Part shown: positions 5,242 through 59,678 of the stretch, piece after piece
Position numbering within the stretch: the first letter of the stretch is position 1
How the letters are laid out: the number at the start of each line of letters is the position of its first letter
From: Paramoeba atlantica
Lineage: Eukaryota > Protista > Discosea
Assembly: GCA_977017575.1 (NCBI GenBank)
Contig: CDRNVI010000047.1
Span: 1-64,000 of the forward strand
Length of the DNA: 64,000 bases
Direction: 5' to 3'
Translations under genes and position numbers: made by a program
Notes under the pieces: model-generated
Told to the model about the DNA's origin: nothing
What the model saw: the letters and a program-made list of their open reading frames with translations, nothing else
The model's database searches: none

Positions 5242-5246
5242 CTTTT

Positions 5247-8709: not shown

Positions 8710-8846
8710 GGACAGTTTCGGCCTTAGTGCCGGCCGGCAACGGGCATATAAAACAGTAAGATTATGCCCGTTGCCGGGGAAAGAAAAGATGAACTAAAGG
8801 GAAAATGTACCAAAAAGGTACAGAAACTGTATCTTTATTTTAGATT
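8710..8846 (-). ncRNA. SL-RNA-like minigene (36-nt exon 8846..8811, GT donor, downstream hairpins); 3' end approximate
   Basis: AATCTAAAATAAAGATACAGTTTCTGTACCTTTTTG|GTAC; 24-nt identity to the SL motif; TGTACC/GGTACA stem across the donor; 15-bp perfect hairpin 8734-8748/8763-8777. Confidence 0.65.
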
Positions 8847-11114: not shown

Positions 11115-12544
11115 AGTTTCTGTACCTTGTTGATTTCTTTTCTATATCGACTTTTTAATGTTCACCAGACAAGCGTACAGAACATGTTGCATTGATTGTT
11201 GTTGCTTTATTCTTACTTTCCCATGGGAGTGGTCACCCGCTCTAAGGCGAAGGAATCGGGAGTAGCTCCCGAAATTTTGCCTCTCCCCTCCACCCGGCGA
11301 AAGAAGAAAGCAACCGAGGTGCGACCTCCGCCGCCAACATCAGACAAATCCCCGCAACCTGAACCATCCTCCTCTGCACTACGCTCGCAACCATCGCCCG
11401 GCCTGCGGCCTTCATCGCCTTCACTGCATTGCGCGTCCACACCTTTTCGGTCGCAGGCGCAATCAGCAGTACTGCCATCGCTATCGTCCCCTCCGGCGAC
11501 GAAGTCCCCTCCAGCAGATTCCTCGTCGGCCGAAAACGCAATAGAGCTTAGGTTCCCCAGTCTACTCCCGCTGCCGACCGGAAACGATGATACAGAAAGA
11601 AATTTTCGCATGTCATTCAGTGAGTTGAAAAAGCAGTTGGACGCACGCGCAGACTCGGAATTGCGCAGACTCGTGCCAAGACTCGGAATTGCGCACCCAC
11701 AGTTACCCGAAAGTATTCTTTGCCCCGGATGCAAAGCTATACTCAATAGCAAGACTGCACTAACACACATACCGGGATGCGTACGCTGTCCGGGATTCAA
11801 CGCCACAGCAAAGCACAACGCCCTAGTTCAATTTGTGTACAAACTGTGTCAAAAAGCCGGTTTACCGAGCGAAAAGGAACCAAGAGCACTCAGCACCTGG
11901 AGTTGTTACACGTGTCATCGAACAGTCGACTTCGAAGCCAGAATACTTCATGAAAAAACTTGCACTGGCAGACGATATCATCGCTCAGGACCGGATATAG
12001 TAATATATTGGAACACTGGTGAAGTTTTTTATGATCCCACAGTTATCCACAATCTCGCACCATCCAATATTCACCGTACGTCCAAGCAACTATTTGCCGA
12101 TGCAATTCAACGCAAACGAGGCACATACGTGGCGACAGGTCTAATCCCAGAAGAAAACTTCATGCGCATTCCCGTACTAGCCTCTGGGTCTTTACATAGC
12201 AACACCAGACTACTGCTACATGCGATTGCCGACGCTACCCTTGCGGTGCGACAGGGCACGGAAATGGAATTCAAGTTGCTTGTTCAAGAACTGGCGGGTA
12301 CTCAGGTATACTCACAGTTACGTCAGCACCTGAGTCACACAAACAAAGAGTGCGAAAGTTTGTATTAAGTATCGCAGAAGGACCCAACTTTACAACTAGA
12401 ATATAACAAAGCTTGCATAGTCGCGTAAGCTTCAAACATAACACCCCCACTATTGGGGGGTAGCGCCATTAACAGGTTAGCTTATTTATTTATTTATCTA
12501 TTTATCTATTTATTTGTAAGTCCTGTTCTAGTTAAAAAAAAAAA
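11115..12544 (+). mobile_element. SL-led, RT-less internally deleted D-type element (ORF 11223..12368), poly(A) tail
   Basis: SL nt 22-39 at 11115..11132; MGVVTRSKAK N-terminus fused in frame to PRLG..CPGC..KHN..RSGPD; no RT; A-tail 12534-12544. Confidence 0.88.
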
Positions 12545-12716: not shown

Positions 12717-15515
12717 CGCAGAGGAAGAAAAGAAAACAAAAGAGAAAGCAGCTGAAACGTCACGTAGGCAGTGCGAAGACTCAGTGGCCACGGCAATCCC
12801 CTCACGCAAACCTCGCATAAAAGTGATCATTGGAAAACAGCGACAAGAAAATCACACAACGATAAGATCAAGTAATGAAGTTCCCCACTCTGAACCATCT
12901 TCGCGTCTTCAAACACTCGGTAAGGTTGCTGGAGTGGTCGGAAAGACTGTGTGGAATGGGCTGCTGACACTGCACGGTGTTCCTACAGCCGAGGAGCGTG
13001 TGACAAGGGAACGCCAAATTGCAGAAACCGCTCGAGGAAAAGAAAGAAGAACGATATCAAAGTTAGATTGCCTCCAGATCACTACGATAAATACAGAATC
13101 TTCAGCGGAACAAACGGTAGGGATGCAAGACGGCAATACCGAGTCTCAGGCAAGCGTCGTTTGGCCAGGCACTACGACGACTGAGTCGATCACTGCGACG
13201 AAAGATGAAACTTCAGCCGAACAGCCGACGCAGGACGCAGATGTCGAATGTCAGACATACGCCGGCTGTTTAACTCCTGAGGACACCCCATTGAGCACGG
13301 GAAGGGTTGACGGGTCTACGACACTGCACGCGGTAGTTGACGAAAATAATATCACGATGCCGAACTTTGAACTTCCTGCTGAAACAGAGTCTGTCATAGA
13401 AGTTGCCAAGGAGGCCGAGATGATAGAGAAGTTGAATAAGTCGATAAACCCAACGGAGCAGTTTCCACTGGCACCGGATACCATCTGGGATTCATCAAAA
13501 ACGGCGAAACAAGGGGACTCGTGCTTGATGGCATGGTGCTTCAGCGATTCCTCGCAGCTGAATGTATCGAAAGGGGTGGTTAAGTCGGTTAAGAAGCGTT
13601 CCGGAATCGGACGGATGTCTCTCCAGTACGAAGGTATAGAAGGGTACAAATGCGGCGAGCAATTTCGTGGGTTCATTCCTCCAAACTCTAATGTGAGAGT
13701 TTATTCAATACAATGGCTAAATATAAAGGATTCAAAAAGCAGCATTGATGTGGACGCTAAAGGAATTCCCAGTAATCAAGGATTTTCTCATACGGAAGCA
13801 GACTTGGATTTCGATCCAATGCCAACCATGCGGACTGTCAGTGCAGAGTTTGTGCCCTGTGTTGTCTCTATCTATCGTGACATAATGCGGTATTACGCAG
13901 ATTCTTCTTACGACCAACGAAATCAAATCTGGCACAGAACCATGTCGGCAATGAAACATTCGTTAGCTACAGTGCGCCATCTCATTGGAAAAAAGCGTCG
14001 TCGCCGCCCAATTCAAAATCAGGAGACGAACGCAGGAAACAGTGAATTGGAACAAAAGGCTAAAGATCTGAGAGCAGTCAAAAAAGCGACACGACTTGTT
14101 TTGGAAGGAGCGATTAAGAAAGCGACGCGCGTGTTAGATCAAGACATCACCGAAACATCATTAGGGGATGAAGAAAAATTGTCTCAATTACAAAAACTAC
14201 ACCCATCTTTACCGATTTCTTTTGAGCTTCCCACCGACGCCACGAAGGTAGCATGTATCCCGCCCCATGAACTCCGAGAAGCAGGAAAGAGACTCGCAAA
14301 AGGCGCCGCCCCAGGTCCATCCGGTACCACAGAGGCCATCATTCGTCTGCTCTTGGACGATGAGATCTGTTGCACGAGTCTAAGCCACATGATGTGCGAT
14401 TTAATTAACGGACTGCTGTCCAAGGATGTAATGCGCAGACTGCGGAGAGCACGCTTAGTTGCACTCCCTAAAACAGCTCAAGCCGTTCGACCGGTGGCAA
14501 TGGGAGAAATTTTTCTCAAGTTGGCTGGACTAATCCTTCTTCTGCGTAACGAACATAAATTTGAAAAGCTTTTCCTGCCGATGCAGCATGGGGTGATGAG
14601 TCGCGCTGGCTGCGAGACTATTGTTCACGAACTCAATCGACGATATATGGAAGGGTGTGCTATCCTCTCGTTGGATATGAAGAACGCTTTTAATAGCCCT
14701 TCACGCGGCGAGATTGCAAAAGCACTTTTTGCTTTGAGCGCCCTTCGGCCTTTTCAGCGACTATTTGTTGCCGAATATGGGACAGCGTCTGAACTCCTCT
14801 TTTACGGAAAGAACGGGGAACTGTTTTCAACAGTTGAAAGTTCGGCTGGAGTTCGCCAAGGGTCGCCGTTGTCGACTCTATACTTCTGCTCCTTTCTTCA
14901 GCCAATACTGGAGACAATTGCACAAGAATTTCCCATGCTACATATATACGCTTATGTTGATGATATCAATATTGCGTCAACTGAGGAAGATCTTGTTGCA
15001 GCTGCCTATGTTCGCCTCAAAGAACTTCTTCTAAGCAAAAAAATCTGCCTTGCCCCTCAAAAGTGTGTATGGTTTAGCGGTCTGAACAATATTCGCCTAC
15101 CCGAAAGTCTAGCGAATGAAGGCGTTCAGATAGCGGAGAAGGCAGTCAAAACATTAGGAGCCTACGTAGGGGAAGCAACCCGAGTCAGTGAGCTGCTTCT
15201 TGCCAAGCTTGAAAAGCATCTAACCATTTTTCGGCGGCTTTGTGACATGGGAGCAAACAACGTTTCGCTTCTCCTCCTGTCGCGATGTGTTAATGTACGA
15301 CATCGATACCATATAAGGGTGCATCGACCGGGAGAAACTTTTGAAATGGCAAAATCTTTTGACAAGCAAGTGCAAGAAGTTCTTACTGCATGGTTTGGAT
15401 CGATGACACCAAAGCAAATTGCTTGGGCGCGTCTACCTGTGAAGAGCGGAGGATTGGGGTTAACGCCCACTGATCTCTTGCGAAAATCGGCGTATGAAGC
15501 ATCAAGGCACAGTGC
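12717..15515 (+). mobile_element. D-related RLE element, RT-containing, 3'-truncated (ORF 12784..15555 runs into next element's SL)
   Basis: GAAPGPSG, RPVAMGE, DMKNAFNS, GVRQGSPLSTLYFC, AYVDD; ends at EASRHSA. Confidence 0.9.
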
Positions 15516-15554
15516 AATCTTTAACGATAAAGATACAGTTTCTGTACCTTGTTG
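15516..15554 (+). other. Spliced-leader-like 39-nt exon (also 55663..55701; partial 11115..11132, 28764..28779, 40520..40551, 45465..45500)
   Basis: 39 nt, starts AA, contains the CAGTTTCTGTAC core of kinetoplastid/diplonemid SLs, ends TTG; identical at two unrelated sites. Confidence 0.85.
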
Positions 15555-15589
15555 AATTATTTTCTTTTTCTTTGTCTACTCTCTTTTTG

Positions 15590-18500
15590 ATGGTAATGAA
15601 CGAGACACACCCAGACAACCATCCTGAGGACACACCTTTCGACCCTGGAATCATGGATTCTAATCAGAATTCTGTCCACGAAGAAAAATCCCATGAATTG
15701 GGTAGTTGGGACCAGTTTAAGGGCAACGAACATCTTATCCGAAGCGCAAGCACCTATGACGAGAGTTTGTACACTACTGCCATCCCGCAGAATATCCCGC
15801 ACGATTGGATGCGCCGTGCGCACGCTTTAGAAAAGGATATTGAAACGCCCGACATGGGTCACGTACATGACCGAACTGAAGAGGAGATCCATTGTAGTGT
15901 CCAGCGTGATATCGATAAGTCTAATAATGTTGATTTCGAAGGAGCTGATTCGATTTCACACAGCCAACTAAGCACATTTAGCAAGGCTGCGAAGATGACC
16001 GATGAGTGCTCTAATGTCAATTCTGACGGAACCGATTCGACTTCACTCAGCCAATTAAGCACATCTAGCAAGGCTGTGAAGACCACTGATGAGGGTCCTA
16101 ATGTCAACTTCGAGGGAACTGATGCGACTTCACCCAGCCAATTGAGAAAATCTAATAAAGCTGTGAAGGCGAGATTTTTACGACACCTTCGAAACTCAGA
16201 ACACTCTAAGAACTGTTACGAATCCGAAAGCAGTACGGCCACGTTTCCAGACCTCACTCCGACGGACCTCGTTTCTCATTTCTCCGTTTCTAGCAGTCTA
16301 AAGAGGCGCAAGAACAAGAAGTGCTCTAAAAGAAATATTACCTCACAGACATCTTTGAACCAATCAGGCTCCGAAAGCACAGTAGCGACAGAGTCGGGTA
16401 GCGACGGAGTCTCCGTTGAACCGGTATCATCACAAGACAGCTGCGTCACATCGGAAGTAAAGCTTAAGCGGAACCGAGCCACTTTCAAATCCGAGCCTGT
16501 TAAATCACCTAACCTCACGCGGAAGACAAAAACATCGTATAACGCTAGAAAGTGTCCAGTGGAATCATGTTTGTGGCAAACCGGTCCTCATGGAAATCAA
16601 TGGCAGGCGTATTATAATCACGTCTCAAACAGGCACGGGGCGGAAGTAACGGACACGTGGTGGGCAGAGGAAGGAAGATTTCGATGTGCATACTGCAAAA
16701 AACATTACCACTTAGGCAAAAAGGAGTCCCATACGCGACATTGCAAATTTCGCACACACTCATCCGATAACCCTCAGGATCCTTCCCGTGAGGTGAACGA
16801 CTCCCCGAACCCTACCACAAACGCCGCTGTGATGCCTCAACGCCCCCCCGGTACAAACCCTAATGATCAGCCCGATCAGATGGAGGATGTTGACAACTTG
16901 CTGCCGACCTTATCTTCTGTGTGCACACTGCCGGTAATTACGAGCAAGGATATCCCTTATTGCTGCAGGGCTGAATGGGCACGAGTACTCACTTCCTGCT
17001 TGACGGCAGCCACGCTAGATAATACACTCGAGGCGTGGACTCTCCTTGCGATGCTTCCGAAATGTGTCCTTCCGGCCCCCCGCCGTGGAGGCAGTAAGAA
17101 CAAAACCTCTTATGCGTCCTACGTCCGAAAATGTCTTTCCAGATGGAACCAAAAGGAGTACATACCCCTCTGGAGTGAAGCAATCGCCAGTCTACAGCGC
17201 AAACGCAAATCCCCGGCGCAAGCAACCAGCGTAGAAGAAAATGACGACAAGGCAGCTCTACGAGCGGCTAGGCTTGCCCGAGATGGAGAGCTATCGCGTG
17301 CCATGACAGCACTGACCTCGGAGCCACTCGCTCCCCATGACGATGCCACCTACAATAAACTCATAAACAAGCACCCTCCACGACTCTCTGGCGAAGACCC
17401 AGGCGAACAACTTCCTTCATCGTCCGTAACCCCTCTCAAGATCACACAGGAAAATGTAACCGAGGCACTCTCAAGTTTCCACAGAGGATCCTCCGGAGGG
17501 GCGTTCGGCCTTCGGCCAGAACATGTGCAGATAGCCATGGCATATCACAACGATGAGCGCATAGATCCATTGGGAACGCTCACCAAGTTCGTTAACCATC
17601 TTCTTTCCGGAGGCGCGATGGACGAGGTCCAGCCGCACTTCGCTGGCGGACGCTTATGTGCACTTCATAAGGGAGCACACGATGTTCGGCCCATCGCCGC
17701 AGGAGAAACCCTCCGGCGCCTCGCAAGCAAGGTTGCGTGCTTTTCTGTCAAACCAAAGGCCTGTCGGCTCTTCAGAGGACATCAGTACGGGGTTGCAATA
17801 CCCGCTGGAGCCGAGAGGGTAATACATTTATGCAGATTGACCATGGCGGAACACGTTGATGACGAGGACTTTGTCTTATGTAAAGTTGATCTCCGAAATG
17901 CGTTCAACCACGTATCACGCAACAGCTTTATTTCGCTCACCCGTCAATATTTTCCTGAGCTTAGTCCCTATGTCGAATGGTGTTACTCTTCAGACAGCCG
18001 CCTAACCTTCGGAGATCGAACGGTCACCTCTTCTGAAGGAGTTCAGCAGGGAGACCCACTAGGCCCTCTTTTATTTTCTCTCGTCGCGAAGGAACTATTT
18101 ACGGAAATCAAGAAGGCAGCCCCAAGGCTTGACTTAAACATGTGGTTCTTGGACGATGGGGTTCTGTCAGGCAAATCTTCAGACGTCAGGCATGCACTTG
18201 ACGTCATTGCAGTCGAAGGTCCCAAGTGGGGCTTACATCTCAATGTTGCTAAATGTGAACTCATTACGAATCCAGCTGCCTCTGACCGATTTGCTCTTTT
18301 TCCGGACATTCCTGGTTTGAACAAAAACACAGACGGCAATCTTGACATCTTGGGAAGCCCTATTGGATCTACAAGCTTTTGTCACCGATACCTATTGGAA
18401 AATCCAATCAGTCTCGCTGAGGACTCACTAACGGCAATACAAAAGTTGGATGACCCTCAAGTGGCCCTATCGCTCATTCGTCATTGCACAGGATTTTGCA

Positions 18501-19834
18501 AAATGGTGTATGCTCTACGCACGACACCTACCGCGGAGCTACAAGACCTTTGCGAACGCCTGGACCGAGCAGTCCAAAACACGACGGAGCGCTTTATCGG
18601 TCCTTTGGGTGAATCGGCTCGACGACAGGCACAACGAGACAAACGACACGGAGGATTAGGGTTGAGGTCCGCTGCAACACACGCCACATCAGCATACGTA
18701 TCTTCTGTAGCCTTTGCGTCTGCAAATGACCGTTGGGACCCCACGCAAGCTGAGAGTTTTGAATTCGCAGTACTGGACGTCAATAGGCGCGCGGGCTATA
18801 ACTTCGTTTCGAATACAGGGAGAATTCCAAAACCTTCGTCTTCCCCACCTGAACAGTTGAACCCAGAAACAGCAAACTCCGACGATATCATCCCGGACGA
18901 AAGAATCCTAGAAGTTTTGCACCCCGACGACGCAGACCCTGAAGCCTCTCGCCCCGTACTAGTAATCCCGCGACAACGAGAATTAAGCCAGGTGATTTCA
19001 GCATCCCAATACTTGGCAGACTATAAAAACGCAGATGACAAAACCAGAGCCCGATGGGTATCCCAAACGGGAGAAGGGGCATCGGAGTGGGCCTTTGTGA
19101 TTCCATCGAAGACCAGTGGTTTCGCTTTCACTTCCGCCGAGTTTCGCACTCTGACGCGATGGTGGCTAGGGGAAAAAATTTACCCCAAGGCAAGACCCTG
19201 CCCTATGGACAAATGTGGGCTCCCGCTAGGCCCTGAGGGGGACCATGCACTTTCCTGCAAGAGTGGGCATGGTATCATCGCTCGCCACAACGCTCTTGCC
19301 AGACAGTTTGCCCGAGACTGCACAAATGCCGGGCTTACAACGAAGCGGGAAGTAAGCCTGCATAACACGGGCCCTGGCGGCGGTCTGACGCGACCGGCGG
19401 ACGTATTTATCTCAAGTTTTCGAGCGGGCCAGGGCCTTGTAATGGATTTCGCTGTCACACACGTCCAGCAAACAAAATATACGGATCTAGTCCGTGATGC
19501 TAGCGTGGTTTCAGCTGGATCCTTTGCGGAAAGATACGCAACGGAACACAAGCAGAAACAACGGGAAGAAGCCGCCGCAGCCAAACTCCGATTTGCGGCC
19601 ATGGCCGTAGAATCATACGGCTCATGGTGCCCCAGCGCTATGGCGGTGATCCGTGACGTGGCAATTGAGCACTCAATGCACTCCGGTAACCTATCCAAAA
19701 AAGAAGCCTTACATCGACTTCTTGCTGGCTTGAACGTCACTTTAATGCGGTCGCAGGCACGTATGATGGTGCTACGATCCCCACCGACACCTGACCCAGC
19801 CCTGATAGGCTATGGCGATATGGAAGTGGTGTAG
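15590..19834 (+). CDS. LsmAD-like + C2H2/C2HC fingers + RT + CCHC + RLE polyprotein
   Basis: WDQF..YDESLYTT; CPVESC..HVSNRH; RPIAAGETLRRL, DLRNAFN, GVQQGDPLGP, FLDDG; CPMDKC..HALSC, RHN, RPADV..MDFAV. Confidence 0.93.
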   Translation: MVMNETHPDNHPEDTPFDPGIMDSNQNSVHEEKSHELGSWDQFKGNEHLIRSASTYDESLYTTAIPQNIPHDWMRRAHALEKDIETPDMGHVHDRTEEEIHCSVQRDIDKSNNVDFEGADSISHSQLSTFSKAAKMTDECSNVNSDGTDSTSLSQLSTSSKAVKTTDEGPNVNFEGTDATSPSQLRKSNKAVKARFLRHLRNSEHSKNCYESESSTATFPDLTPTDLVSHFSVSSSLKRRKNKKCSKRNITSQTSLNQSGSESTVATESGSDGVSVEPVSSQDSCVTSEVKLKRNRATFKSEPVKSPNLTRKTKTSYNARKCPVESCLWQTGPHGNQWQAYYNHVSNRHGAEVTDTWWAEEGRFRCAYCKKHYHLGKKESHTRHCKFRTHSSDNPQDPSREVNDSPNPTTNAAVMPQRPPGTNPNDQPDQMEDVDNLLPTLSSVCTLPVITSKDIPYCCRAEWARVLTSCLTAATLDNTLEAWTLLAMLPKCVLPAPRRGGSKNKTSYASYVRKCLSRWNQKEYIPLWSEAIASLQRKRKSPAQATSVEENDDKAALRAARLARDGELSRAMTALTSEPLAPHDDATYNKLINKHPPRLSGEDPGEQLPSSSVTPLKITQENVTEALSSFHRGSSGGAFGLRPEHVQIAMAYHNDERIDPLGTLTKFVNHLLSGGAMDEVQPHFAGGRLCALHKGAHDVRPIAAGETLRRLASKVACFSVKPKACRLFRGHQYGVAIPAGAERVIHLCRLTMAEHVDDEDFVLCKVDLRNAFNHVSRNSFISLTRQYFPELSPYVEWCYSSDSRLTFGDRTVTSSEGVQQGDPLGPLLFSLVAKELFTEIKKAAPRLDLNMWFLDDGVLSGKSSDVRHALDVIAVEGPKWGLHLNVAKCELITNPAASDRFALFPDIPGLNKNTDGNLDILGSPIGSTSFCHRYLLENPISLAEDSLTAIQKLDDPQVALSLIRHCTGFCKMVYALRTTPTAELQDLCERLDRAVQNTTERFIGPLGESARRQAQRDKRHGGLGLRSAATHATSAYVSSVAFASANDRWDPTQAESFEFAVLDVNRRAGYNFVSNTGRIPKPSSSPPEQLNPETANSDDIIPDERILEVLHPDDADPEASRPVLVIPRQRELSQVISASQYLADYKNADDKTRARWVSQTGEGASEWAFVIPSKTSGFAFTSAEFRTLTRWWLGEKIYPKARPCPMDKCGLPLGPEGDHALSCKSGHGIIARHNALARQFARDCTNAGLTTKREVSLHNTGPGGGLTRPADVFISSFRAGQGLVMDFAVTHVQQTKYTDLVRDASVVSAGSFAERYATEHKQKQREEAAAAKLRFAAMAVESYGSWCPSAMAVIRDVAIEHSMHSGNLSKKEALHRLLAGLNVTLMRSQARMMVLRSPPTPDPALIGYGDMEVV

Positions 19835-21120
19835 TTCCATCCTCTTTTGCATCCTCTGGTCCGGATGTTGGTCGTGTCGACAGAGTCTATGCTCACGCCT
19901 AGTCCGTCAGGGCTAGGTACCCCAAGTGAGGTAGCACACGGGTAGTGAATCTCCTCCCCGTCGGCCAGCATCCTGTTTCGCGACCGTGTCGCTGTCGACA
20001 CAGGCCCGCGCCTGCGCCCTCCCGTATAGCAAGGGACGGGTTCACAAGTCAGGCCGTGGAGAGGTCGAAAGACCCGGTCCGGAACGCGCGAATGGATTGG
20101 GAATGGATTGCTTGTTTTTATTGTTATTGTTTTTATTGTTCTTATACTTACGGGAGATCGAATTGCTAGTTTTGGGCTCCAAAATATGAAATTGCTAATT
20201 TGATTGCTTGTTTTAAAATCATATACCCCCCCCCCCAATGGACCTACTTGGTTCGTCTAATGGGTCAAAATATAGAGGCAATGCCGCGATTCATACTTCT
20301 CCCCCCCTATTAATTGCAAAAAAAAAAAAAAAAAAAAAAACCTGGTCCTAGGGTTTGGAGGTTGTCCCTATAAAAAAAAAAATAAATAAAATGAAATCCA
20401 GTTCATGCTTTCACGTACATTAACAAAGAATATGAAAAGATATATTAAGAAGAAATATAACTGGAAATGGAACCATTGATTGTAAAACAGAACACGTAGG
20501 GAGGACTTTGAAACTTCGACGCCACAGAACATGGAAGCGAAACAAATGGACATCTGTTCCACTCGAATTGACAAATCCGGAGAAGCACAGGAGCCTCACT
20601 ACAAGAGTGCACAGGAATCCTTTGTGAAGCCGAAGAAAACACCAAGAATTCGGGTTGTCATGCAGAGCTCTGGCAGACCGCTGTCATCAAATTGGGCAGA
20701 TCATGAAATGCATGATTTCGAATCGCGACATATCCCATCTAGCCATCGATCGGCTCGGAATCATGAGAAAAGCTGTGAAGTCGATTCCTCGGAAAGCTGC
20801 GATTCACCGAGTGAAGTTTCTGAGGAAGGACACGACTCGGATACTATGTCGTTGGATGGTGAAAAAGAAGGCATCAATTGCATTGGTTTCTCCAAGGCCC
20901 CAGATCAGGTACACAACATAATAAACGAGTGGGGCAAAGACACAACCGGTGCGATTCAATGGAGCTTTCGAAGAATCAATGAGAAATATAGTTCCGTTGG
21001 AGAAGTCGTTAAGAGGACGGTCCGGAAAGGCATCGTGAAACTCAAAATAGCTTACAAACCTTGCGTCGGACATGAGGGGCCCTCAGGCTTTCTTTTTCTT
21101 CCCCAATCAGAATAAAAAAA

Positions 21121-28758: not shown

Positions 28759-31700
28759 GTACATTTCTGTACCTTGTTGACTTTTTCTTTACTACTACTT
28801 TAACCTCTTTTATGTCAGTTCCTTCCTCGCGGGCGGCGCAACGTACGCCGTCGGAGAATCGGCAGACCACTGCAACTGTTAGGAGCACTGGCGTACAGGA
28901 GAACAACTTGAACTTCACCGAAGAAGCGAATAGACATGAGATTGGTTCATGGGACCAGTTCAAAGCCAACGACAAACTCATTAAAGCAACCAGCAACTAC
29001 GACGAACTCAAGTACACGACCTCCATTCCACAACATATACCCCAGCACTGGGCAGAGAAATCAGAGAAAGCCGCTCTCAGCATCGAGAAAAATCCAACCG
29101 CAGATACCGGCCAACACAAAGAGTACGGCGAAGAGGATACTTTCGCGAGTGTTCAAAGAAACAAAAGCTCAGATCAAGCTCTATCAGACCCCTCCGCATT
29201 TAAAATAAAGATCAGAAAAGAAAATACCACACATAAAAACAAAAAGCAAATTCCAAAGAAAGTCAAAGTTATACTTCGCACTACCAACTCACCAGCTCAT
29301 CAGCAAGCGAAGCATGCAGAAGCAGACATGTCACAGGACGAGCAAGACTCAAGTGACTCATGCACAAGTGGACCAGACATCTCGGACGACGACATGCTGA
29401 CTTTGACCGATCTCGCAGCAAGCACATTAAAGACCCCCGATCAGGTCGTGAAAATTATAAGCCAATGGGGAAAAGGATCTACCTGCGAAGTGCATTGGAA
29501 ATTCAGACACTGCGATGAAGTCTTTCACTCTATCGGAGATGTTGTGTCACGCCATTCCCGGAAAGGCACAGTTAGGGTGAAGATATCCTACACACCGAAA
29601 AATGGTTCAGGTCCATCAGGATTTCTCTACCTACCCGCATCACACAAGATAAATATTTTTCGACTACGCGCAATAAAACTAAATCGTATCGCTACGCAAT
29701 CGACACAGTTAGATCTGGGCGAAGTACAAGATTATGACGCAGGCGGCGACCTAGAACCACTCCCCTCCTTCACCGAAATAGACCCGACATTCGCATCCCA
29801 CGTCGTAGCAATCTTTAGAGAGATCTTACGAGGATATCCCGCGCTGCATCTCGCATCAGAAAAAACCTCTGTCTGGCACAAATTTCTTAACGCACCACGT
29901 GATTCACTCGCTACTGTACGGCAAGCGATCCAGCGAAAGTACAGCAACCCGAAAACCAGATCAACACGCAAGGACGAGTTCCTCACCACACAAGATGAGA
30001 AAATAGAACGTGAGGCCGACCAACGCTCAATACGTTCCGCGCTACGGACAGCTAGAGCTAGAAACTTGATCAAAGCCACCCGCATCCTCGACAACATATA
30101 TCTAGACACGAATCTCAGCATTGACGAAAAGGTAGCAAAGCTTAAGGATCTACACCCGGAGGGAGAACGTCCTAGTCTCACGTCAGCCCAATATCCACGA
30201 ACCGGGATTATCGAAAAACACGAACTCCGAGCAGCAATTGAAAAGTTGGCCCCGGGAGCCTCCCCAGGCCCAACAGGTTTGAGCGAGGCTATGTTGCGTC
30301 TACTAGCAGATGACGAAGAATCTAGCACGGCTCTGTGTCATATGCTGCGAGACATGGTAAACGGAGACATCGCACCGTCGGTACGCGAAAGATTGACTCG
30401 ATGCCGGCTCATGGCAATCAACAAACCAGAAAATGGAATAAGACCAATCGCAATCGGAGAAACTCTGCTAAAGATATGTGGGTCTATTCTATTAAACCGA
30501 AACGAAGAAAAACTCAAGAAATTCTTTGAGCCTGAGCAACGAGGAATTCTGCAAAAGAACGCCTGCGAAGGTATTGTCCACGAACTCATCGATGAATACG
30601 ACAAGGGGCACGCCATTCTAACAGTTGACTACAAAAACGCATACAACACCCCTTCCCGTCAAGCAATATCTGAGGCACTAACTCACAACAACATCTTTAA
30701 ACCATTTATGCGCATCTTCAATTTGGAATACGGAGAGCCTTCTGACCTACTTTTCTTCACCAACAACACACTCCATACAATAGTGAAAAGTTCCTCCGGA
30801 GTTCGGCAAGGCTCTGCCCTCTCGTCTCTATATTTTTGCGCCCTCATTCAAAACTCACTCAAAGAAATCGCGGAATCGTTCCCAGACGTTACAGTGCGCG
30901 CTTACATGGACGACATAACGCTATCATCAACTAATCCCATATCCCTCCAAACGGCTTTCCTTCATTTACACGAGTCTTCAAAACTACTCGGTCTACATGT
31001 GAATTACAGCAAATGTGAATGGTTTCAGAAAGTGGATACCCCCTGTGCTCCTCAAATCCTGCAAACCATGGGAGTGGGACATCCTCAGACAGCAGTAAAA
31101 ATCTTAGGCGCATACATCGGTCAGGATAGAATGGTAAATGAATGCTTATTAAAGAAGTTCGACAAACATAAGTGCCTCTTCCGTCGCTTACGACTAATGG
31201 GACCAAGCAACCTCTCCTTAGCAATTCTGAATCGCTGCACGATCCCCCGTCAGGACTACCATCTACGAGTCCACAAACCTGACGCCACTCTCGAACTAGC
31301 ACAACGCTTTGATGCAGAGGTTACGAGTATCATTGAACTTTGGTTTAATTCGACGGGCCCATCTACAACTCTAACAACTCTACCACAGTATCTTGGGGGA
31401 CTCGGGCTCAAGCCGTCATGCTTGAAACAAAAGTACTTTTTCCTTGCCTCTCGCAAGGCCATTGAAGAGCAATCAAAATCCTACAACGCTCCGGTGGTCA
31501 CTGCGGGATCCAAGCGAATCAGAACCAAAAGCGAACACGCCAACCTGACAAACGATACATCCAAGCGAATGGCCATGAAAGCGATCCGAGCCGAGCAAAA
31601 ACGCACTGCGACCGAGCTCAAAAAGGATAAACGCCTCAGCGAACTGATGGAACGAGGATCATCATCTTTTCAACATCTACATTCAACCAGCAATTACATA

Positions 31701-32430
31701 AATCCATATCTCTTCCGATTTTGTATAATGATGCGCCTAGGAATCGTGCCCAACAATATGCCAAAAACAGTCGTGTGCCCAGGATGCCTGTCAGAACATA
31801 CGTCCGACACGATATTTCAACATATACCTGGATGCACGCAATGCTGTGGAATCAATGCGACAAAGAAACACACAAGATTAGTTCGTTTCTTAGGAGAACT
31901 GTGTGCCAAAGCAGGGTTAGCTCACGTTGTAGAGCCAAGAGTACATTCATCATTCTTCTGCACTAAATGTAAGGCAACAGTCTCTGACGAGCTCTCCGAA
32001 AATCACCCATGCAGAGCCAGGTGCATACGCTCCGGTCCCGACCTAGGCATTATGTGGTCTCATGCAGGAGAAATTCTCTACGACGTCACCGTTGTTCACA
32101 GTTGTGCCCCTAGCTACACCAAGTCCTCCACAGAACAGTTAATGCAGAATGCTCTTGACCGTAAACACAAGAAATACGTCCTGCAAGGAGGAATTCCAGA
32201 AGAAAGTTTCAGCTGCTTGGCAATGACCGAATTAGGGCAGCTACACAAAAACACGAAAACCCTTTTGTCTCTATTGGCCCAACGATCACAACAAGACGTT
32301 AAAGTCGTGAAAGAAGCCTTCCAGCTCGAGATTGAGAAGATGAATGCATATACCATTGCAACGCAACTTCGAAAGTACGTTCCATCAGCACAATGGCTTG
32401 GCGGACTAAATCATTGATCGACTCTAGTAC

Positions 32431-32963: not shown

Positions 32964-34223
32964 CCAATCCAATCCAAAAGACCGACATATGTCGGTTAGA
33001 ATGTTAAATGTTTTCCCCCCGAACTTATACTCCCTCGCCTTCCAATTCAGAGTTTAGTAGTGCCTACTATTTTACTTTCACACAATACTTTTCCTTTATC
33101 TTCCTGAACTCTTCCTCAGGGTATTCCGAACCTGCTGGTGGAAACACATCTTCCGCCCAACTCTTACTATGAAGGCGCCCTCTTTCCACCAGTTTTCGCA
33201 ATCTTCCCGCACAGCGTGACTTTAGCCTCGGCGCCACGCTTGGGTGCTGGATTGGTTTTCGTCTTTCCCTTTTCCAAGGTTCTATGTTTTATCAGCTTTT
33301 CCAAGGATTTGTCGATTTGTGATGCGTTGGAATCATTACTTGTTTTTCTCTTTTTCTGCTCAGGCGGTCGAGGAACTTTTCGCGCTGCAATCAGTGCTAA
33401 CCCATCTGCCTCGTCGTTCCATTTATTTCCTGAGTGACCCTTGACTTTGCACATATATATTGAGTACAAATCATGTTTTAAGGACCGTAATTTTCCGTCT
33501 AACTGGGAGAACAAATCTCCATTTAAAACTCCCTTGTAACCAACGATTCGCCGCCGATATCGAAGATTGTGAAAGAAGTCCCATAGATAGTAAGAGTCTG
33601 TATGAAACAGACAAGCGCATGGTTTTGACGGCAGTTGGAGAAGGGCATGCTGAAAAGCTAAGATCTCTACTCGCTCAATAGTGTCTGATTCCAATGGTAT
33701 GGATATCCGTGAGGGTTCGCATCGTGGTTTTAGAACTACGATACCTATGCCACTTCGAATCTCTTTCGTATTTTTCATCGGCAGAACAGAGCCATCGGTA
33801 TAGATTTGTATGGCTTTATAGGCTGGAAAAGGCACATTTGATTCTTCAACGAACTGTAATTCTGAAGGACTTTTTCGTTTTTTAGCTTTGGCAAGAGCAG
33901 TTTTCCACTTTGCTGACCCAATTTTTTCGTATTCTATGAGCGGTTCAAGTTCACGTCGCAATTTTTCTGTCAGACGATACCAGTGTTCACGGTCTGACGC
34001 AAATACCAATGCCTCTTCCAGTGTAATGTTAAGATCCTTGAAGCAAGCCTCGCTTGGAGATAAATTGCGTGCATTCGGGCGTTGTTTCCACTGTACAAGC
34101 TCTTGAAAATCACTGGAGTGCCTCAGCATGTGCCCTACGAGCTTGGCCCTCTGAACCTTGTGTATAGTAGAAAAGCGCTCAGTTTCAAGATACAGAGAAG
34201 CATTCGGGTAGCTCATTCCGTAT
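32964..34223 (-). mobile_element. Family F APE-RT-RNase H LINE, 3' part with (TTGGA)n tail; continues at 38724..39520 and 50905..52128
   Basis: RNase H YTDGS, RVEILA, HTDS, GHSGNKWNDEAD; 12-bp TSD GTAGTTTAGTAT 32952-32963 / 52129-52140. Confidence 0.88.
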
Positions 34224-37200
34224 ATGTTGAATTGTTGGTTGTTGTTTTCCTATTCTTACTTTTCATGGGGATGTTTACCCGCAGCCGGGCGAAAGACACG
34301 GGAGTAGCTCCCGTCGTGCAGCCTCTGCCGCCGTCCCGCCGAAGGAAGAAACCGCCCGAGGAACGATCTCCAGTGGCACCGCCGTCGCCAACGTCGCCGC
34401 CGCCGCCGGCATCGCCGCCACCGCCAAGCGGTAGCCGCCAAGTCACTAATGCAACCCAAACGCCGCATCCCGCCGCCATCTCACCACATTCGCGACTGAC
34501 GTCACATCCCTTGGATGAATCGGTTCACGATCCGATCGCCTCCTCTATGCCACGTTTGTCATCGCCCTTGTCACCTCCTGAGTCACTGTCCAAGCCATCG
34601 GGACTTCCTCCACCACCCGATTCGCCGTCGCCCTCCCCTGGACGAAGCGCGTCAACTCTGTCTACAGGTTTTTCTACACGGCCGTCCTCACCTCAACGAC
34701 CTCCCTCGTCACCTCTTCCGGTAACACCGCCGGACTCCCCGAAAGCGAAACAAAAAACTGCTAAGTCGGAGTGTACAGTCAAAATTAAGAGTGCCATACT
34801 CTCTTCGGATTTCTTCAACCGTCGTCACAAAAAGCTAAATCTTGTCCAACATAGCATGCCACAAGACGACAGCCCAATAATTCGCCACCCACAGGGTTGC
34901 ATCAAGATGAAAAAAAACACAGCTAGAGAAACAGCTTTCACTAAGAGTAGCAAAGAACCGACCTACGCACAAGCAGCCACCCCTCCACCGAAAGAGCCCA
35001 CTACCCTTGACGAGCTCGTGTTAAGACCATTAAATCCATCGGCGGTAGCCAGAGACAATCTCCGCAAGAAAATTATGGAACTGCAAATATCCAACCAGAG
35101 AGGCAAAGAAAACGAAACTAGCGACAAGGAAAATTCAGAACACAGTGTAAGAGCACAAGCCATCGCACTGCACATGCACGGGGGTGATTCGAATAATAAC
35201 GAGCATATCATGCGCCTTGAAAAACTATACGGGGACTCAACGCCTGCGAAGCATACATCAGATAGTCAATCAGCATCACCAACACCATCCCCAGCTCAGG
35301 TTGAATTCCATGAATGCGAGTCTCCTACGCCCAAAGACTACACTCCCCAAGGACTACCCTCGCCACCTATTCCCGTAGACATTGAAGTCTCAAACGAAAG
35401 CAGATCTTCCATCATTTATTGTGAGAAGAGCGACAACGATACATATGTGGAAAACATCCTGAGCGCGATAAAACCAGAAGTGCAATTTCCACTTACATCT
35501 AAAGAAATAATTCAATCGTGCTCGAGTATCAAAAATGGAACAAACTGCACGATCGTTTGGACTTTCGACCGGCAAACCAAACTCAACATCTCTGAAGGAA
35601 CAGTAATGAAAATAAACAGTAGGGCCGGTAAAAAGAAAGTTACAATCCAATACAAAGGCGTTCGAGGACATCGCACTGGAGATACATTTGGTGGCTTTCT
35701 TCCACCACAAGAAAACATTCGAATCTATCAAATACAGTGGCATTGCACACCGATGGGCAAAGAGGCGGGCGAGCACGAAGAGGAGGGAGAACACGGAATA
35801 AACATGGAATCAACGCTTCACTCAAGCAATTGGGGTGAGGACGATGTTGATCATCTGCCCATTCCGACCGCCAAGACAATAAGCACAGATTACATTCCGA
35901 CAGTGATTGCAATATACCGCGATATCATGCAGACCTACGAAAGCAGCGACTATCCTCTAAGAAACAAAATCTGGAATAAAGTTCTTTCTGCCATGAAATT
36001 GTCCTTAGCCGCCGTACGACAGGCCAACGGCAGACGGAGACGACGACGACCGCTGACGCGTGATTCTATGAATCCTAATGGATCTGAAGAACACGAGGAA
36101 AAAGAACGCGAAGAAAAGGAAGATCTGCGAGCCATTAAAAAGGCCACGCGTCTTGCTCTAGAAGGTTGCGTTTCAAAGGCCACAAAGGTATTGGATCGTT
36201 CGTTCAACCGCAGCACCCTCACAGTTCAAGAAACAATGCAAAAATTACGGGAATTACATCCTGAACAATCTTGCGACTTTGCGGTCCCCGACGACGCCCC
36301 CATCATAGCAGCAATCTCCATCTACGAACTTCGAAGCGCTAGCAAGCGATTGGCCAAGGGAGTCAGTCCGGGACCCACAGGTACCACTGATAGCGTTATT
36401 AGGTTGCTCATTGACGATGAACCTTGTTGCAACAGTCTGTGCCACATGATGGGAGACCTTATCAACGGGTTTCTCTCGCGCCAAGTGATGCAGCGACTGA
36501 ATAGGGCTCGTCTCGTAGCAATTGCAAAGCCAGACGGTGGAGTTCGCCCCGTAGCTATCGGCGAAATTTTCGGCAAACTGGCGGGCTTAATACTTCTTCA
36601 AAGATATGAAAAAACGCTTGAGCCGTTATTCTCACCCATGCAACAGGGAGTCTTTTCGCAAGCCGGATGCGAGAGAATTGTACACAAGTTACGCGATCGC
36701 TACCTAGATGGACATACAATATTATCAGTTGATATGAAAAATGCATTTAATACACCATCCAGAAACGAACTGGCAAAAAGCGTTTTCGCTTTTGCAACCC
36801 TAAAACCCTTCCAAAGATTCTTCGCAGCAGAATACTCGGAGCCTTCCGATCTACTCTACTACGGGTCTGATGGGAATTTGGCTGGCATTATTCCGAGTTC
36901 GGCTGGTGTGAGACAGGGCTCTGCTCTGGCAAGTCTGTATTTCTGTGTCTTCTGCCAACCCATACTCGAAACGCTCGCTTCAGAATATCCCGCAGTAGAA
37001 ATAAACGCGTACATCGACGACATTACGCTTGTTTCTCGTGACCCTTCCAATCTGGAGAAGGCGTTCTTCAGATTAAAAGACCTGTTGAAAGATAAACGAG
37101 TACTATTAGCTGAATCAAAATGCGTGTGGTATCAAGGAACTTCAGATCATGGAATCCCAATGGCCCTCCACGAACAGGGAGTCAAGACAGAGACGGAGGC

Positions 37201-38723
37201 CATAAAAATACTGGGAGCTCATATCGGCGACAACGAAACGGTCAGTGAACGTCTGCTTCGGCAAATTAGCAAATACGAAACCGGGTTTCGGCGACTAAAG
37301 AAAATGGGAATAAACAACATCTCCCTGTTGTTGTTATCCAAATGCGTAAACGTTAGGCTACAGTATTTGATGAGGGTGCATGAAGCGAATGCAACGGATA
37401 AAGCATCCTTGCAGTTCGACCACCAGGTTGAAAGTATTGTGGAAGCTTGGGTGGGATCCCTTTCCTCGTCACAGAAGAAAATTATGCGCTTACCAGTCAA
37501 AAAGGGAGGTTTCGGTTTAACGGCGTACAATCCTCATCGTGAGAATGCTTATGCGGCCTCGCGCTTTTCGGTTCTTGAGCACCAAAGTTCATCTTCAGTT
37601 CGGACCGACAAAGACATGGCAACCGCACACCCTTGCATTCCGAAAGCAACTAACCTAAAAATTACACCAGTTGACAACCAGACAGCCAACGCAATTCACC
37701 ACGATGAAGCTCTGAAAGAGTTGCAACAAGACCCTGAACTCAAACTAATCTTGCAAGCGAACTCATTTAAAGGCAATAACGACTGGCTTCTGTCACACGC
37801 CCGATACATACCGTCTCATCTGTTCAAGCTTGCCATTATGCCCAGACTTAATGCTCACCATCAAGACCTTCCCTCAAGCCTTCTATGCCCCGGATGCAGT
37901 ATGATACTGAATAATCGAAGCGCTCTTTTTCATATCTCAGGCTGCTCCCAATGCTCCGGATTTAACACAACGATGAAACACAATTCGCTCGTAACCTTTA
38001 TACAACGTCTTTGCCACAAAGCGGGTTTACCCTGCGAAAAAGAGCCCAGAGCTTTCTCTTCCTGGAAATGTCTGACATGCGGAATTAGCATTAACCCAGA
38101 AAATCGATCAACGCACCAGAAAGTATGCGCTGGAAGGCGTCTATGCCGCTCTGGTCCGGACCTGGTCATTTACTGGAATACTGGCGAAGTCTTTTATGAC
38201 CTTACGGTCATACACGAGCTCTCAGTCACGAATCGCTCCAAAAAGTGCACCCAACTAATGAACGAAGCTATCAAAAAGAAAATCAACACATACGTTAAAA
38301 CCGAACTCATAAGGGAGGAATGCTTCGAGTGTCTGCCAGTGTTGTCCGGGGGTGCTCTCCACCGAAACACTCAAAGACTAATCCAAGTTCTAGCTGATGC
38401 AGCAGGAATTGATCGTCAACTGGCGGAATTGGATTTCAAGCTTTTGGTGCAGGAGTTGAACGGTATCGAAGTATACTCTCAACTTCGAAAATATCTTGAT
38501 GGAAACCGTGACACTCTAGAATTTAGTTTATAATAGATAAAAGACAACATTTCAACTTCCCGCTTTATTGTGGGAGATTACTCCAGAGATTATCGTTACT
38601 TATAATAAAAAGAAAGGTATCCTATTGATGAAGAAAGATATAAAAAATGTATTATTTCGAACGGATGCGTTTCAATGTACCGATTTGCATCGGTTAAGAA
38701 CAAAAAAAAAAAGCATTTCTTTG
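34224..38723 (+). mobile_element. Full-length D-type RLE retrotransposon inserted into F
   Basis: GTAT overlap 34220-34223 / 38724-38727; A-tail 38702-38712. Confidence 0.88.
34265..38533 (+). CDS. Pro-rich N-terminus + beta-rich domain + RT + Zn fingers + RLE polyprotein
   Basis: MGMFTRSRAK start; GVSPGPTG, RPVAIGE, DMKNAFN, GVRQGSALASLYFC, AYIDD; CPGC..HISGC, KHN, RSGPDL..YDLTV. Confidence 0.93.
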   Translation: MGMFTRSRAKDTGVAPVVQPLPPSRRRKKPPEERSPVAPPSPTSPPPPASPPPPSGSRQVTNATQTPHPAAISPHSRLTSHPLDESVHDPIASSMPRLSSPLSPPESLSKPSGLPPPPDSPSPSPGRSASTLSTGFSTRPSSPQRPPSSPLPVTPPDSPKAKQKTAKSECTVKIKSAILSSDFFNRRHKKLNLVQHSMPQDDSPIIRHPQGCIKMKKNTARETAFTKSSKEPTYAQAATPPPKEPTTLDELVLRPLNPSAVARDNLRKKIMELQISNQRGKENETSDKENSEHSVRAQAIALHMHGGDSNNNEHIMRLEKLYGDSTPAKHTSDSQSASPTPSPAQVEFHECESPTPKDYTPQGLPSPPIPVDIEVSNESRSSIIYCEKSDNDTYVENILSAIKPEVQFPLTSKEIIQSCSSIKNGTNCTIVWTFDRQTKLNISEGTVMKINSRAGKKKVTIQYKGVRGHRTGDTFGGFLPPQENIRIYQIQWHCTPMGKEAGEHEEEGEHGINMESTLHSSNWGEDDVDHLPIPTAKTISTDYIPTVIAIYRDIMQTYESSDYPLRNKIWNKVLSAMKLSLAAVRQANGRRRRRRPLTRDSMNPNGSEEHEEKEREEKEDLRAIKKATRLALEGCVSKATKVLDRSFNRSTLTVQETMQKLRELHPEQSCDFAVPDDAPIIAAISIYELRSASKRLAKGVSPGPTGTTDSVIRLLIDDEPCCNSLCHMMGDLINGFLSRQVMQRLNRARLVAIAKPDGGVRPVAIGEIFGKLAGLILLQRYEKTLEPLFSPMQQGVFSQAGCERIVHKLRDRYLDGHTILSVDMKNAFNTPSRNELAKSVFAFATLKPFQRFFAAEYSEPSDLLYYGSDGNLAGIIPSSAGVRQGSALASLYFCVFCQPILETLASEYPAVEINAYIDDITLVSRDPSNLEKAFFRLKDLLKDKRVLLAESKCVWYQGTSDHGIPMALHEQGVKTETEAIKILGAHIGDNETVSERLLRQISKYETGFRRLKKMGINNISLLLLSKCVNVRLQYLMRVHEANATDKASLQFDHQVESIVEAWVGSLSSSQKKIMRLPVKKGGFGLTAYNPHRENAYAASRFSVLEHQSSSSVRTDKDMATAHPCIPKATNLKITPVDNQTANAIHHDEALKELQQDPELKLILQANSFKGNNDWLLSHARYIPSHLFKLAIMPRLNAHHQDLPSSLLCPGCSMILNNRSALFHISGCSQCSGFNTTMKHNSLVTFIQRLCHKAGLPCEKEPRAFSSWKCLTCGISINPENRSTHQKVCAGRRLCRSGPDLVIYWNTGEVFYDLTVIHELSVTNRSKKCTQLMNEAIKKKINTYVKTELIREECFECLPVLSGGALHRNTQRLIQVLADAAGIDRQLAELDFKLLVQELNGIEVYSQLRKYLDGNRDTLEFSL

Positions 38724-59397: not shown

Positions 59398-59678
59398 GAA
59401 ATCAAAAGTACAGAAAAGATACAAATTGGAATTATAAAGTCTGCGAAGAGATAGACAAAAATCAGCACTAAAAGTTTATGTAAACTTGAGAAAGTTCTTG
59501 GATATCATACGGACTAAACTGCATATTCAAATCATTCTAAATACAAGCGTACAATGCCCGCCGGCCATTTATCGGCGTATAAAAAAAAAAAAAAAAAAAA
59601 AAGTGTTCGCCGGTTCTGTGGGCGACGAGGGTGACTGTTGTGACTCCCGTTTGGGTAAGATTAGTGCGGGCGATGGAA
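57646..59678 (+). mobile_element. 5'-truncated D-type element with poly(A) and 76-nt 3' extension
   Basis: TSD GCGCATC 57639-57645 / 59679-59685; A-tail 59581-59602. Confidence 0.88.

Follow-up and report, generated by a model that had tools for sequence, protein, structure and literature searches.

Non-LTR retrotransposons of Paramoeba atlantica with a predicted N-terminal LsmAD domain, probably captured from the host PBP1/ataxin-2 lineage

Ataxin-2 is tied to spinocerebellar ataxia type 2 and amyotrophic lateral sclerosis, and flies, mice and trypanosomes cannot do without it. A 2026 survey describes the LSmAD domain as a unique hallmark of this protein, practically all LSmAD sequences being ataxin-2 orthologues, and gives the function and partners of the domain as unknown (PMC12898128). 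Why, then, should such a domain stand in front of a reverse transcriptase (RT)? The question is raised by a 64,000-nucleotide (nt) stretch of Paramoeba atlantica DNA (contig CDRNVI010000047.1, positions 1 to 64,000; hereafter the window), in which a sequence-only reading had noticed LsmAD-like segments at the N-termini of retrotransposon proteins of three families, A, B and C. We asked whether these segments are LsmAD domains, where they came from and what they may do. Each of the five segments quoted in that reading lay inside a long plus-strand open reading frame (ORF), and the letters read as quoted. The domains were located as follows:

15683..15922, plus strand: LsmAD of A copy 1 (PF06741; Pfam core 15749-15913; includes the segment 15701-15907 that was noticed first)
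45629..45868, plus strand: LsmAD of A copy 2 (31.7 bits in the six-frame search)
40662..40901, plus strand: LsmAD of C (PF06741)
28926..29165, plus strand: LsmAD of B copy 1 (PF06741; element clade with 99/99 support)
55855..56094, plus strand: LsmAD of B copy 2

The curated cut-off (gathering score) of Pfam PF06741 (LsmAD) is 25 bits. Element A exceeded it with 27.1 bits when its whole frame of 1446 amino acids (aa) was scanned (residues 86-140), with 31.3 bits (E 2.9e-7) for the excised N-terminus and with 32.1 bits for an 80-aa piece. Element C reached 19.8 bits (E 1e-3; 24.1 bits in the six-frame search) and element B 14.9 bits (E 0.04; 20.9 bits in the six-frame search, copy 1). That B and C, taken singly, score under the cut-off is what one would expect if the resemblance were due to chance, or if the segment were a neutral passenger of no use to the elements. 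Yet both families fell inside the same well-supported element clade as A, and the LsmAD of B scored 121 bits against a profile of the element domains, as measured via its near-identical copy P0010. In the proteins of A, B and C, LsmAD was the sole Pfam family match in the N-terminal region. Further, all 15 N-terminal domains from different element families matched PF06741 (best E 5.7e-9).

These 15 different domains were taken from the window copies, from 20 fetched copies and from one copy on contig L034; the 20 fetched loci were picked by their LsmAD match, and the share of elements of the RT lineage of A (lineage 1) that carry the domain is not derivable from them. The aligned domains were 42-59% identical to that of A. 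Fifteen columns were invariant (H4, G7, Q11, F12, N15, L18, S23, Y30, T31, T32, P35, T55, D57, G59 and E66; n=15) and six further columns were conserved in at least 90%. The positions of the core WDQF..N......S.Y.E.LYTT (W9, Q11, F12, N15, L18, S23, Y25, E27, L29, Y30, T31 and T32) were invariant or at least 90% conserved, and the elements share this core with the LsmAD of ataxin-2, Pbp1 and trypanosome PBP1 (WDQF..N...STYDE.LYTT). The helix after the core and the acidic '..EE..xS.V.R' end were also conserved between the element domains and the ataxin-2 family. In contrast, 'FGV' and 'N.H..EERG' of ataxin-2 were replaced in the elements by 'I/V.G' and 'TPDTGH'.

The profile built from the 15 element domains alone gave 1341 matches at E<=1e-3 among 1.84 billion representative proteins. 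The top 23 were N-terminal pieces of the same elements. A Pfam scan that took in ten of the best-scoring non-element proteins out of the 1341 found PF06741 in all ten; only P0027 and P0039 also carried SM-ATX, and P0027 a PAM2 motif. Thus, PF06741 finds the elements and the element profile finds LsmAD proteins, which establishes homology in both directions. On these profile matches, with A above the cut-off, the N-terminal 80-100 residues of the elements are almost certainly a true LsmAD domain, as the sequence-only reading had claimed.

We then placed the domain within the elements. In A copy 1 the following parts were recognized:

15494..19834, plus strand: open frame of 1446 aa (ORF list)
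15517..15554, plus strand: spliced leader (SL), 38 nt (sequence read)
between the SL and the ATG at 15590, plus strand: pyrimidine-rich 5' untranslated region (UTR) of 35 nt
15590..19834, plus strand: ORF of 1414 aa, counted from the ATG that comes first behind the SL; stop at 19834
15935..16168, plus strand: tandem repeat of 87 bp (29 aa), 2.7 copies, between LsmAD and the zinc fingers (Tandem Repeats Finder)
16553..16759, plus strand: two zinc-finger-like motifs, C-x4-C...H-x5-H and C-x2-C...H-x3-C (motif scan)
17672..18268, plus strand: RT (Pfam RVT_1, 51.8 bits, frame residues 727-925)
19199..19468, plus strand: Cys/His motif followed by RHN...RPADV...D, candidate restriction-like endonuclease (RLE) (motif scan and reading of the C-terminus)
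20318..20340, plus strand: poly(A) tail; the 3' end of A with poly(A) recurs at 45040-45070 and 45445-45464

The other copies with LsmAD comprised these parts:

45465..45500, plus strand: A copy 2, SL minus its first 2 nt, adjoining the poly(A) of an upstream 3' fragment
45536..49780, plus strand: A copy 2, intact ORF (frame 45335-49780)
40522..40551, plus strand: C, 5'-truncated SL behind a poly(A) run
40596..44174, plus strand: C, ORF of 1192 aa with zinc fingers directly after LsmAD, then RT and RLE
28764..28779, plus strand: B copy 1, SL reduced to a remnant of its 3' end
28812..32417, plus strand: B copy 1, intact ORF of 1201 aa, second RT lineage
55664..55701, plus strand: B copy 2, complete SL
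57646..59678, plus strand: 5'-truncated copy of another element type (E) nested in B copy 2, 2033 bp, poly(A) at 59581-59602

The two B copies were collinear save for this 2033-bp block, the remainder of B copy 2 lying at 59679-61386. The inserted block was nearly identical to an E-type ORF on contig L034. Because the nested insertion is in frame, the 1233-aa frame 55696-59397 that had been taken for B copy 2 is a chance chimera.

The element protein is thus encoded by a single ORF in the order LsmAD, zinc fingers (in A and C), RT and RLE, and LsmAD begins 20-40 residues past the initiator Met in every family. RVT_1 scores ranged from 51.8 to 82 bits across the element ORFs, and the best solved-structure matches of the RT half of A were R2 retrotransposon proteins (E 3.5e-5). 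The endonuclease is a candidate by motif only: C-x3-C..H-x4-C, RHN and RPADV..D were found by eye and by regular expression. A Pfam search found no apurinic/apyrimidinic endonuclease (APE) match in the element A protein. Judged by their sequence, the elements are non-long-terminal-repeat (non-LTR) retrotransposons of the RLE type with an R2/CRE-like build, the endonuclease being putative, and the placement of LsmAD at the N-terminus of RT plus RLE elements holds to this extent. Further, Pfam detected no SM-ATX or LSM domain in any element ORF, and a regular-expression scan of all of them found no PAM2. Ataxin-2 carries an Lsm/SM-ATX domain before LsmAD and PAM2 after it, whereas in the elements LsmAD is by itself at the head of an RT-endonuclease protein. 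By domain content the element protein is not an ataxin-2 family member, because it has neither Lsm nor PAM2.

The domain had been claimed for two separate RT lineages. A and C were 52% identical over 1115 aa, from RT through the C-terminal end, and belong to one RT lineage; A and the other copies selected by LsmAD were 45-62% identical over most of the ORF. In contrast, the RTs of A and B copy 1 were only 24% identical over 473 aa, and in a tree of the RT-to-RLE region a branch labelled 100 set B, D, E and relatives (lineage 2) apart from lineage 1, in agreement with the claim. The LsmADs of A and B copy 1 were 44% identical. Lineage 2 includes elements in which no LsmAD was found, as follows:

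34082..38533, plus strand: E frame of 1483 aa, RT lineage of B, without LsmAD (RVT_1 only); N-terminus 'MGMFTRSRAK', then proline-rich
11117..12368, plus strand: internally deleted E-type copy with an SL remnant (11117-11132), 5' UTR and 'MGVVTRSKAK' proline-rich N-terminus joined to the RLE end
12784..15516, plus strand: D, E-like, about 290 N-terminal residues missing and the 3' side cut by the insertion of A copy 1

The first 455 aa of the E frame had no Pfam match even at E<=1. The deleted copy at 11117-12368 keeps the SL remnant and the 5' UTR and has no LsmAD, indicating that E-type elements are without the domain at their genuine 5' end. The sequence-only reading had cited D as lacking LsmAD. 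D is uninformative on this point, since it is truncated at both ends: its alignment with E-type proteins opens only near their residue 290, a poly(A) run instead of an SL directly precedes it, and its frame runs into the SL of A, translated as 'DKDTVSVPC'. The substance of the argument stands nonetheless, as the full-length E-type relatives of B do lack LsmAD. The RT tree requires at least two changes of LsmAD state. Further, an N-terminal 'M(G)..TRSKAK' motif is common to the E type and some lineage-1 families. This motif, and an LsmAD far more alike than the RT, favor an exchange of 5' modules between RT lineages, which agrees with the modular swap or loss proposed earlier; alternatively, LsmAD may be ancestral and lost in E.

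As a separate observation, B- and D-type elements of lineage 2 share a region of about 70 aa between the N-terminus and RT, '..W(G)K(G)..C.V.W.F....G.V..R..RKG.V.VKI.Y.P....GPSGFL(Y/F)LP', at 29400-29750 (B), about 13300-13700 (D) and 20531-21115. It had no Pfam match and could be a small beta-barrel targeting domain.

Where did the domain come from? The two highest-scoring LsmAD matches in the genome (53.4 bits) did not belong to elements; they were an intronless gene on contig C44 and its copy on C66. The C44 gene encodes SM-ATX (31.1 bits), LsmAD (48.6 bits) and a PAM2-like LNPNARAFTP in the canonical ataxin-2 order, and by this content it is a PBP1/ataxin-2 homologue. Its LsmAD reads EKSHRAGSWDQFKANEHLVRGKSTYDELLYTTSIPKNL, that of element A reads EKSHELGSWDQFKGNEHLIRSASTYDESLYTTAIPQNI, and 'EKSH..GSWDQFK.NEHL.R..STYDE.LYTT.IP.N' is common to the two. 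Single domains scored against the element-only profile as follows:

element domains: at least 92 bits
P0026 (environmental fusion): 83.6 bits
host C44: 81.7 bits
P0034 (environmental fusion): 67.4 bits
ordinary ataxin-2: at most 61 bits

In a maximum-likelihood tree of 62 LsmAD domains, 20 element domains, including that of B, formed one clade (ultrafast bootstrap 99, Shimodaira-Hasegawa-like approximate likelihood-ratio test 99), which joined host C44, P0026 and P0034 at 98/87. The remaining rows were a second LsmAD gene on contig C163, seven domains of P0015, P0024 and P0025, and 32 random other ataxin-2 domains; the tree does not include P0144 and P0057, which are long rows, or element fragments that were nearly identical. 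A quick tree of 144 rows agreed. The C44 LsmAD retains the canonical second half (N.QH..DRG...DEE..FSGV.R), in place of which the elements have 'TPDTGH' (B, 'TADTGQ'). All elements share 'IP..IP..W' or 'LPPDPS', and the C44 gene is without these.

The transfer could also have run the other way, C44 having taken its LsmAD from an element, or both could have received it from an unsampled LsmAD protein. The tree is unrooted within the 23-row clade of elements, C44, P0026 and P0034, which leaves room for either course. In addition, C44-type LsmADs are fused to unrelated N-termini in the environmental proteins P0026 and P0034, so that this subtype seems mobile among genes. However, the canonical order SM-ATX, LsmAD, PAM2 in C44 speaks against both, and its canonical second half makes C44 an intermediate between ordinary ataxin-2 and the elements. 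Further, the flanks of the C44 gene contained no SL relic and no poly(A), indicating that the gene itself is not a retrocopy. We consider the reverse or third-party origin improbable. Very probably, judging from the tree and the shared residues, the domain was captured a single time from the host PBP1 lineage and then diverged within the elements; a host origin had been proposed from the letters alone, and the nearest cellular relative is indeed the host gene with SM-ATX, LsmAD and PAM2.

Two further observations concern the host genes. The C163 gene (locus L032, about 4400-5300, minus strand) is a second, canonical LsmAD gene with GT-AG introns, and its domain reads …WDQFSANKELFGVETSF / EEIYTTPLDK… / NVHLQEERG…DEEDLYSGV. 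At 34% G+C, the 10-kb stretch fetched around it differs from the window and the remaining fetched loci, which have 45-46%; a second organism in the assembly may be the source of this contig, and we did not rely on the gene. Contigs C44 and C66 were 99.3-99.5% identical over aligned blocks of about 8 kb, and host genes were also paired between C39/C40, C10/C58 and C37/C39. On this evidence the assembly probably holds both haplotypes.

A six-frame PF06741 search over 45.7 Mb in 248 contigs, in which 150 of 195 candidates were scored, gave at least 151 LsmAD matches, about 100 of them above the cut-off and about 64 in unbroken frames of at least 1150 aa. Since host-gene contigs are paired, these element copy counts may be up to twice the haploid number. 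Such a number of sequence matches is far beyond chance, and the LsmAD-bearing elements form dozens of families in the genome. The two A copies were 98.7% identical in DNA over 4.67 kb and 99% in protein, with both ORFs intact; by this near identity they are young.

Over the 80 LsmAD codons, the ratio of nonsynonymous to synonymous substitution rates (dN/dS) between families was 0.08-0.33 (for example, 0.16 at dS 0.60, 0.09 at dS 1.19, and 0.09-0.11 at dS near 1.0-1.2). The linker behind LsmAD could not be aligned between families. As read from these codon comparisons, LsmAD is under purifying selection in active elements while these split into many families. Thus, chance resemblance and a neutral passenger are refuted by the profile matches (15 of 15 families, and 1341 proteins in the reciprocal search), by 15 invariant columns across families only 42-59% identical and by dN/dS, and we leave them next to no weight. 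It is highly likely that the domain is useful to the element.

How do the elements travel? Full-length copies start with ATCTTTAACGATAAAGATACAGTTTCTGTACCTTGTTG, which was seen in A copies 1 and 2, in C, in B copy 2 and at locus L018. B copy 1 and the E-type copy at 11117 retain only the 3' part, and a further 3'-part site lay at 8811-8826 on the minus strand. The 3' half, which we take to be the conserved spliced-leader motif of kinetoplastids and diplonemids and which served only as a search lead, had 204 genomic matches compared with none for the reversed control. Where an upstream frame runs into the SL, its last residues read 'DKDTVSVPC'. High-depth contigs of a possible RNA run with the same species label carried the exact SL joined to unrelated sequences. 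These contigs and the 204 genomic matches together indicate that the sequence is the host spliced leader, and from this leader the organism is read as a euglenozoan. The SL heads the copies and a poly(A) tail closes them, so that they derive from trans-spliced, polyadenylated mature mRNA. No SL intron followed the SL in the copies, and their upstream flanks were poly(A) runs of other copies, the ORF of another element or unrelated DNA; the copies are therefore not derived from insertion into SL genes.

CRE-clade elements insert at one fixed position inside spliced-leader RNA genes. In contrast, the complete SL is here the element's own 5' end, and fixed insertion into SL genes was not seen. 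Our elements share with the CRE clade (CRE1/2, SLACS, CZAR) and with R2-type elements the single ORF, N-terminal zinc fingers, RT and C-terminal Cys/His motif, followed by a putative endonuclease region, and A also shares the internal tandem repeat and poly(A) tail of the CRE clade, for which a curated description lists RT, RLE, poly(A), internal repeats and one or two zinc fingers (PMC12278014). The earlier label 'CRE' thus fits the architecture but lacks the insertion that defines the clade.

We next compared the fusion with known proteins. The 2025 curated mobilome of trypanosomatids makes no mention of Lsm or ataxin and gives no LsmAD for CRE elements (PMC12278014). The 2026 survey lists many ataxin-2 chimeras, with no mention of reverse transcriptase or transposons (PMC12898128). 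Searches of the full-text literature gave only spurious matches to lettuce 'LsMADS' genes and nothing relevant on ataxin-2 in non-LTR retrotransposons; no account of LsmAD in a retroelement came up, consistent with what had been supposed. No LsmAD-RT fusion outside this organism was present in the best 150 of the 1341 profile matches. A scan of Joint Genome Institute (JGI) metagenomes with the domain profile yielded 53 LsmAD loci, all of the ordinary type and none with an RT within 5 kb, and none of the 100 nearest RT clusters in the ESM Atlas carried LsmAD. In a word index of 5.8 billion proteins the host C44 protein had no match and the whole element A had only four, one of them on contig L034. 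As the E-type ORF of L034 is nearly identical to window positions 57646-59678, the public 'relatives' belong to this organism or to a very close one and show no wider distribution. The nearest ESM Atlas clusters included fusions of RT with PHD and with Peptidase_C48, the same kind of event, in which a host module is added to an RT polyprotein; the module captured here belongs instead to mRNA-fate control, not to chromatin or proteolysis. The capture of host domains by non-LTR elements is already known; this domain and its scale are new.

LsmAD free of an Lsm domain, as in the elements, also occurs in cellular proteins without RT, such as Diplonema papillatum KAJ9472136.1 and Tephrocybe rancida KAG6907410.1. 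The former (P0015) has, like P0024, P0025 and P0035, a PDZ domain and two or three LsmADs, with an RRM in P0015 and P0024; the latter (P0031) combines three LsmADs with a protein kinase. These domains lay outside the 23-row clade and scored 46-53 bits each against the element profile. In the environmental P0026 and P0034, LsmAD is the sole Pfam domain, behind unrelated N-terminal regions. Such non-ataxin LsmAD proteins contradict the published view of LsmAD as a mark of ataxin-2 orthologues only.

What would the domain do for the element? The sequence-only reading had suggested that it might protect, localize or translate the element's own RNA. Host gene control is almost wholly post-transcriptional. 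Isolated human LSmAD does not bind RNA, is flexible and only assists the neighboring LSm domain (PMC11898529). Fly Lsm plus LsmAD alone cannot find the target mRNAs, and in the authors' model the structured domains of ataxin-2 dock it on other RNA-binding proteins in messenger ribonucleoproteins (mRNPs) (PMC7946432). The LSm/LSmAD region binds DDX6 (PMC12898128). Further, a trypanosome study reports that PBP1 binds MKT1, LSM12 and PABP, and that tethering of MKT1, LSM12 or PBP1 raises the level of a reporter mRNA, PBP1 being weaker than the other two (PMC3985637). Since LsmAD in isolation neither binds RNA nor folds well, it is most likely a protein adaptor, and it may fold on a partner. An AlphaFold2 model of the isolated element domain had four short helices at low confidence (predicted local distance difference test, pLDDT, 67.7; predicted template modeling score, pTM, 0.27), too weak for a fold search, and this would fit a segment that folds on a partner. 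A sequence search of the PDB showed LsmAD to be absent, with only chance matches at E>0.6.

We suggest the following course. LsmAD would leave the ribosome first and hook the nascent RT protein to the partners of PBP1 at the poly(A) end of the mRNA, the candidates being the MKT1-PBP1-LSM12-PABP complex as in trypanosomes and DDX6 as in animals. Such tethering could stabilize or activate the element's own SL-capped, polyadenylated mRNA, and could keep the protein with the RNA that encodes it, a cis-preference lasting up to the priming of reverse transcription at the poly(A) tail. We put this mechanism forward tentatively, at somewhat short of an even chance. A stronger form, in which LsmAD is an autonomous partner-binding module and not a mere helper of Lsm, and the elements use it to seize the PBP1-partner complex on their own mRNA, we would call rather unlikely.

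Two other roles were weighed. A free LsmAD could act as a decoy, competing with host PBP1/ataxin-2 for a partner and so disabling a pathway that restrains or sequesters element RNA. An LsmAD without Lsm domain and PAM2 has the usual shape of a dominant-negative fragment, it conserves the core residues that it has in common with the host domain, and the roughly 64 potentially intact copies could give high expression. A decoy, however, has no need of fusion to RT, and the constant position within the first 100 residues in all families better fits a task in cis. Moreover, the trypanosome PBP1 complex activates and stabilizes mRNAs (PMC3985637), so that blocking it would be of no obvious help to an mRNA-like element. 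We judge a decoy unlikely. LsmAD could also serve as an address label that sends the element ribonucleoprotein to stress or starvation granules of the ataxin-2/PBP1 type for storage or assembly. The same study places trypanosome PBP1 in granules on starvation (PMC3985637), and the docking of ataxin-2 structured domains on RNA-binding proteins in mRNPs, as modeled, would be compatible with such a role (PMC7946432). Yet fly granule assembly needs the disordered regions of ataxin-2 and not LsmAD, Lsm plus LsmAD alone misses its target mRNAs (PMC7946432), and no sequence feature specifically indicates localization; we give the address label the same low standing as the decoy.

Several points weigh against an adaptor that tethers the protein to its own mRNA. 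The model of the isolated domain is of low confidence. In the sole possible RNA run, element A was covered only in its SL, and no transcript of the family was seen. Ataxin-2 binds PABP via PAM2 and not via LsmAD, and the elements carry no PAM2. The E type, of the same class, manages without LsmAD, so that the domain is not indispensable. A prediction of the complex between the host C44 Lsm domain (112 aa) and the element LsmAD scored 0.00; we list it here, although it counts neither way. The 'AD' domain of LSM12 (PF09793) had no six-frame match in the genome, where the search controls were equally silent. Finally, the 2026 survey knows of no organism with an established partner of LsmAD (PMC12898128), and the target of the adaptor is accordingly a guess. 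Taken as a whole, a captured and selected LsmAD with an adaptor role seems to us the best explanation, with odds slightly in its favor.

With respect to possible partners, a 355-aa frame with an SM-ATX-like Lsm domain (33.6 bits) and without LsmAD was present at C39:528980-529195 and C40:320191-320406. By its domain it is a candidate LSM12-like partner of PBP1.

The window contained other repeats apart from the elements described above:

1-3483: 3.5-kb array of the 10-mer TCTTTCTTCC, 350 copies with 97% matches, at the contig start; a strand-pure pyrimidine satellite
5419-8063, plus strand: overlapping frames of 331 and 639 aa, the second with a weak RT-RNase H match
22905-26459: a different long interspersed nuclear element (LINE) with RT, RNase H and a weak APE-type endonuclease match
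25378-26635 against 27501-28758, and 23231-25277 against 52129-54175: parts of this LINE as 99.4% identical inverted duplicates

Pfam gave nothing significant for the frames at 5419-8063. By eye, the first is tyrosine-recombinase-like, and the two may belong to a DIRS-like element.

In P. atlantica, LsmAD has been separated from the other parts of ataxin-2, fused to RT, multiplied to more than 100 copies and kept under purifying selection. The elements thus show that LsmAD can work without an Lsm neighbor. They supply a deep natural alignment of the LsmAD residues that matter, and the element LsmAD is a simple bait for finding the partner of the domain. Further, they are a new case of a mobile element taking host mRNA-fate machinery, in elements that travel as ordinary trans-spliced, polyadenylated mRNAs. 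If LsmAD is an autonomous module, the elements would be a natural separation-of-function experiment that points to the long-sought partner of the ataxin-2 LsmAD.

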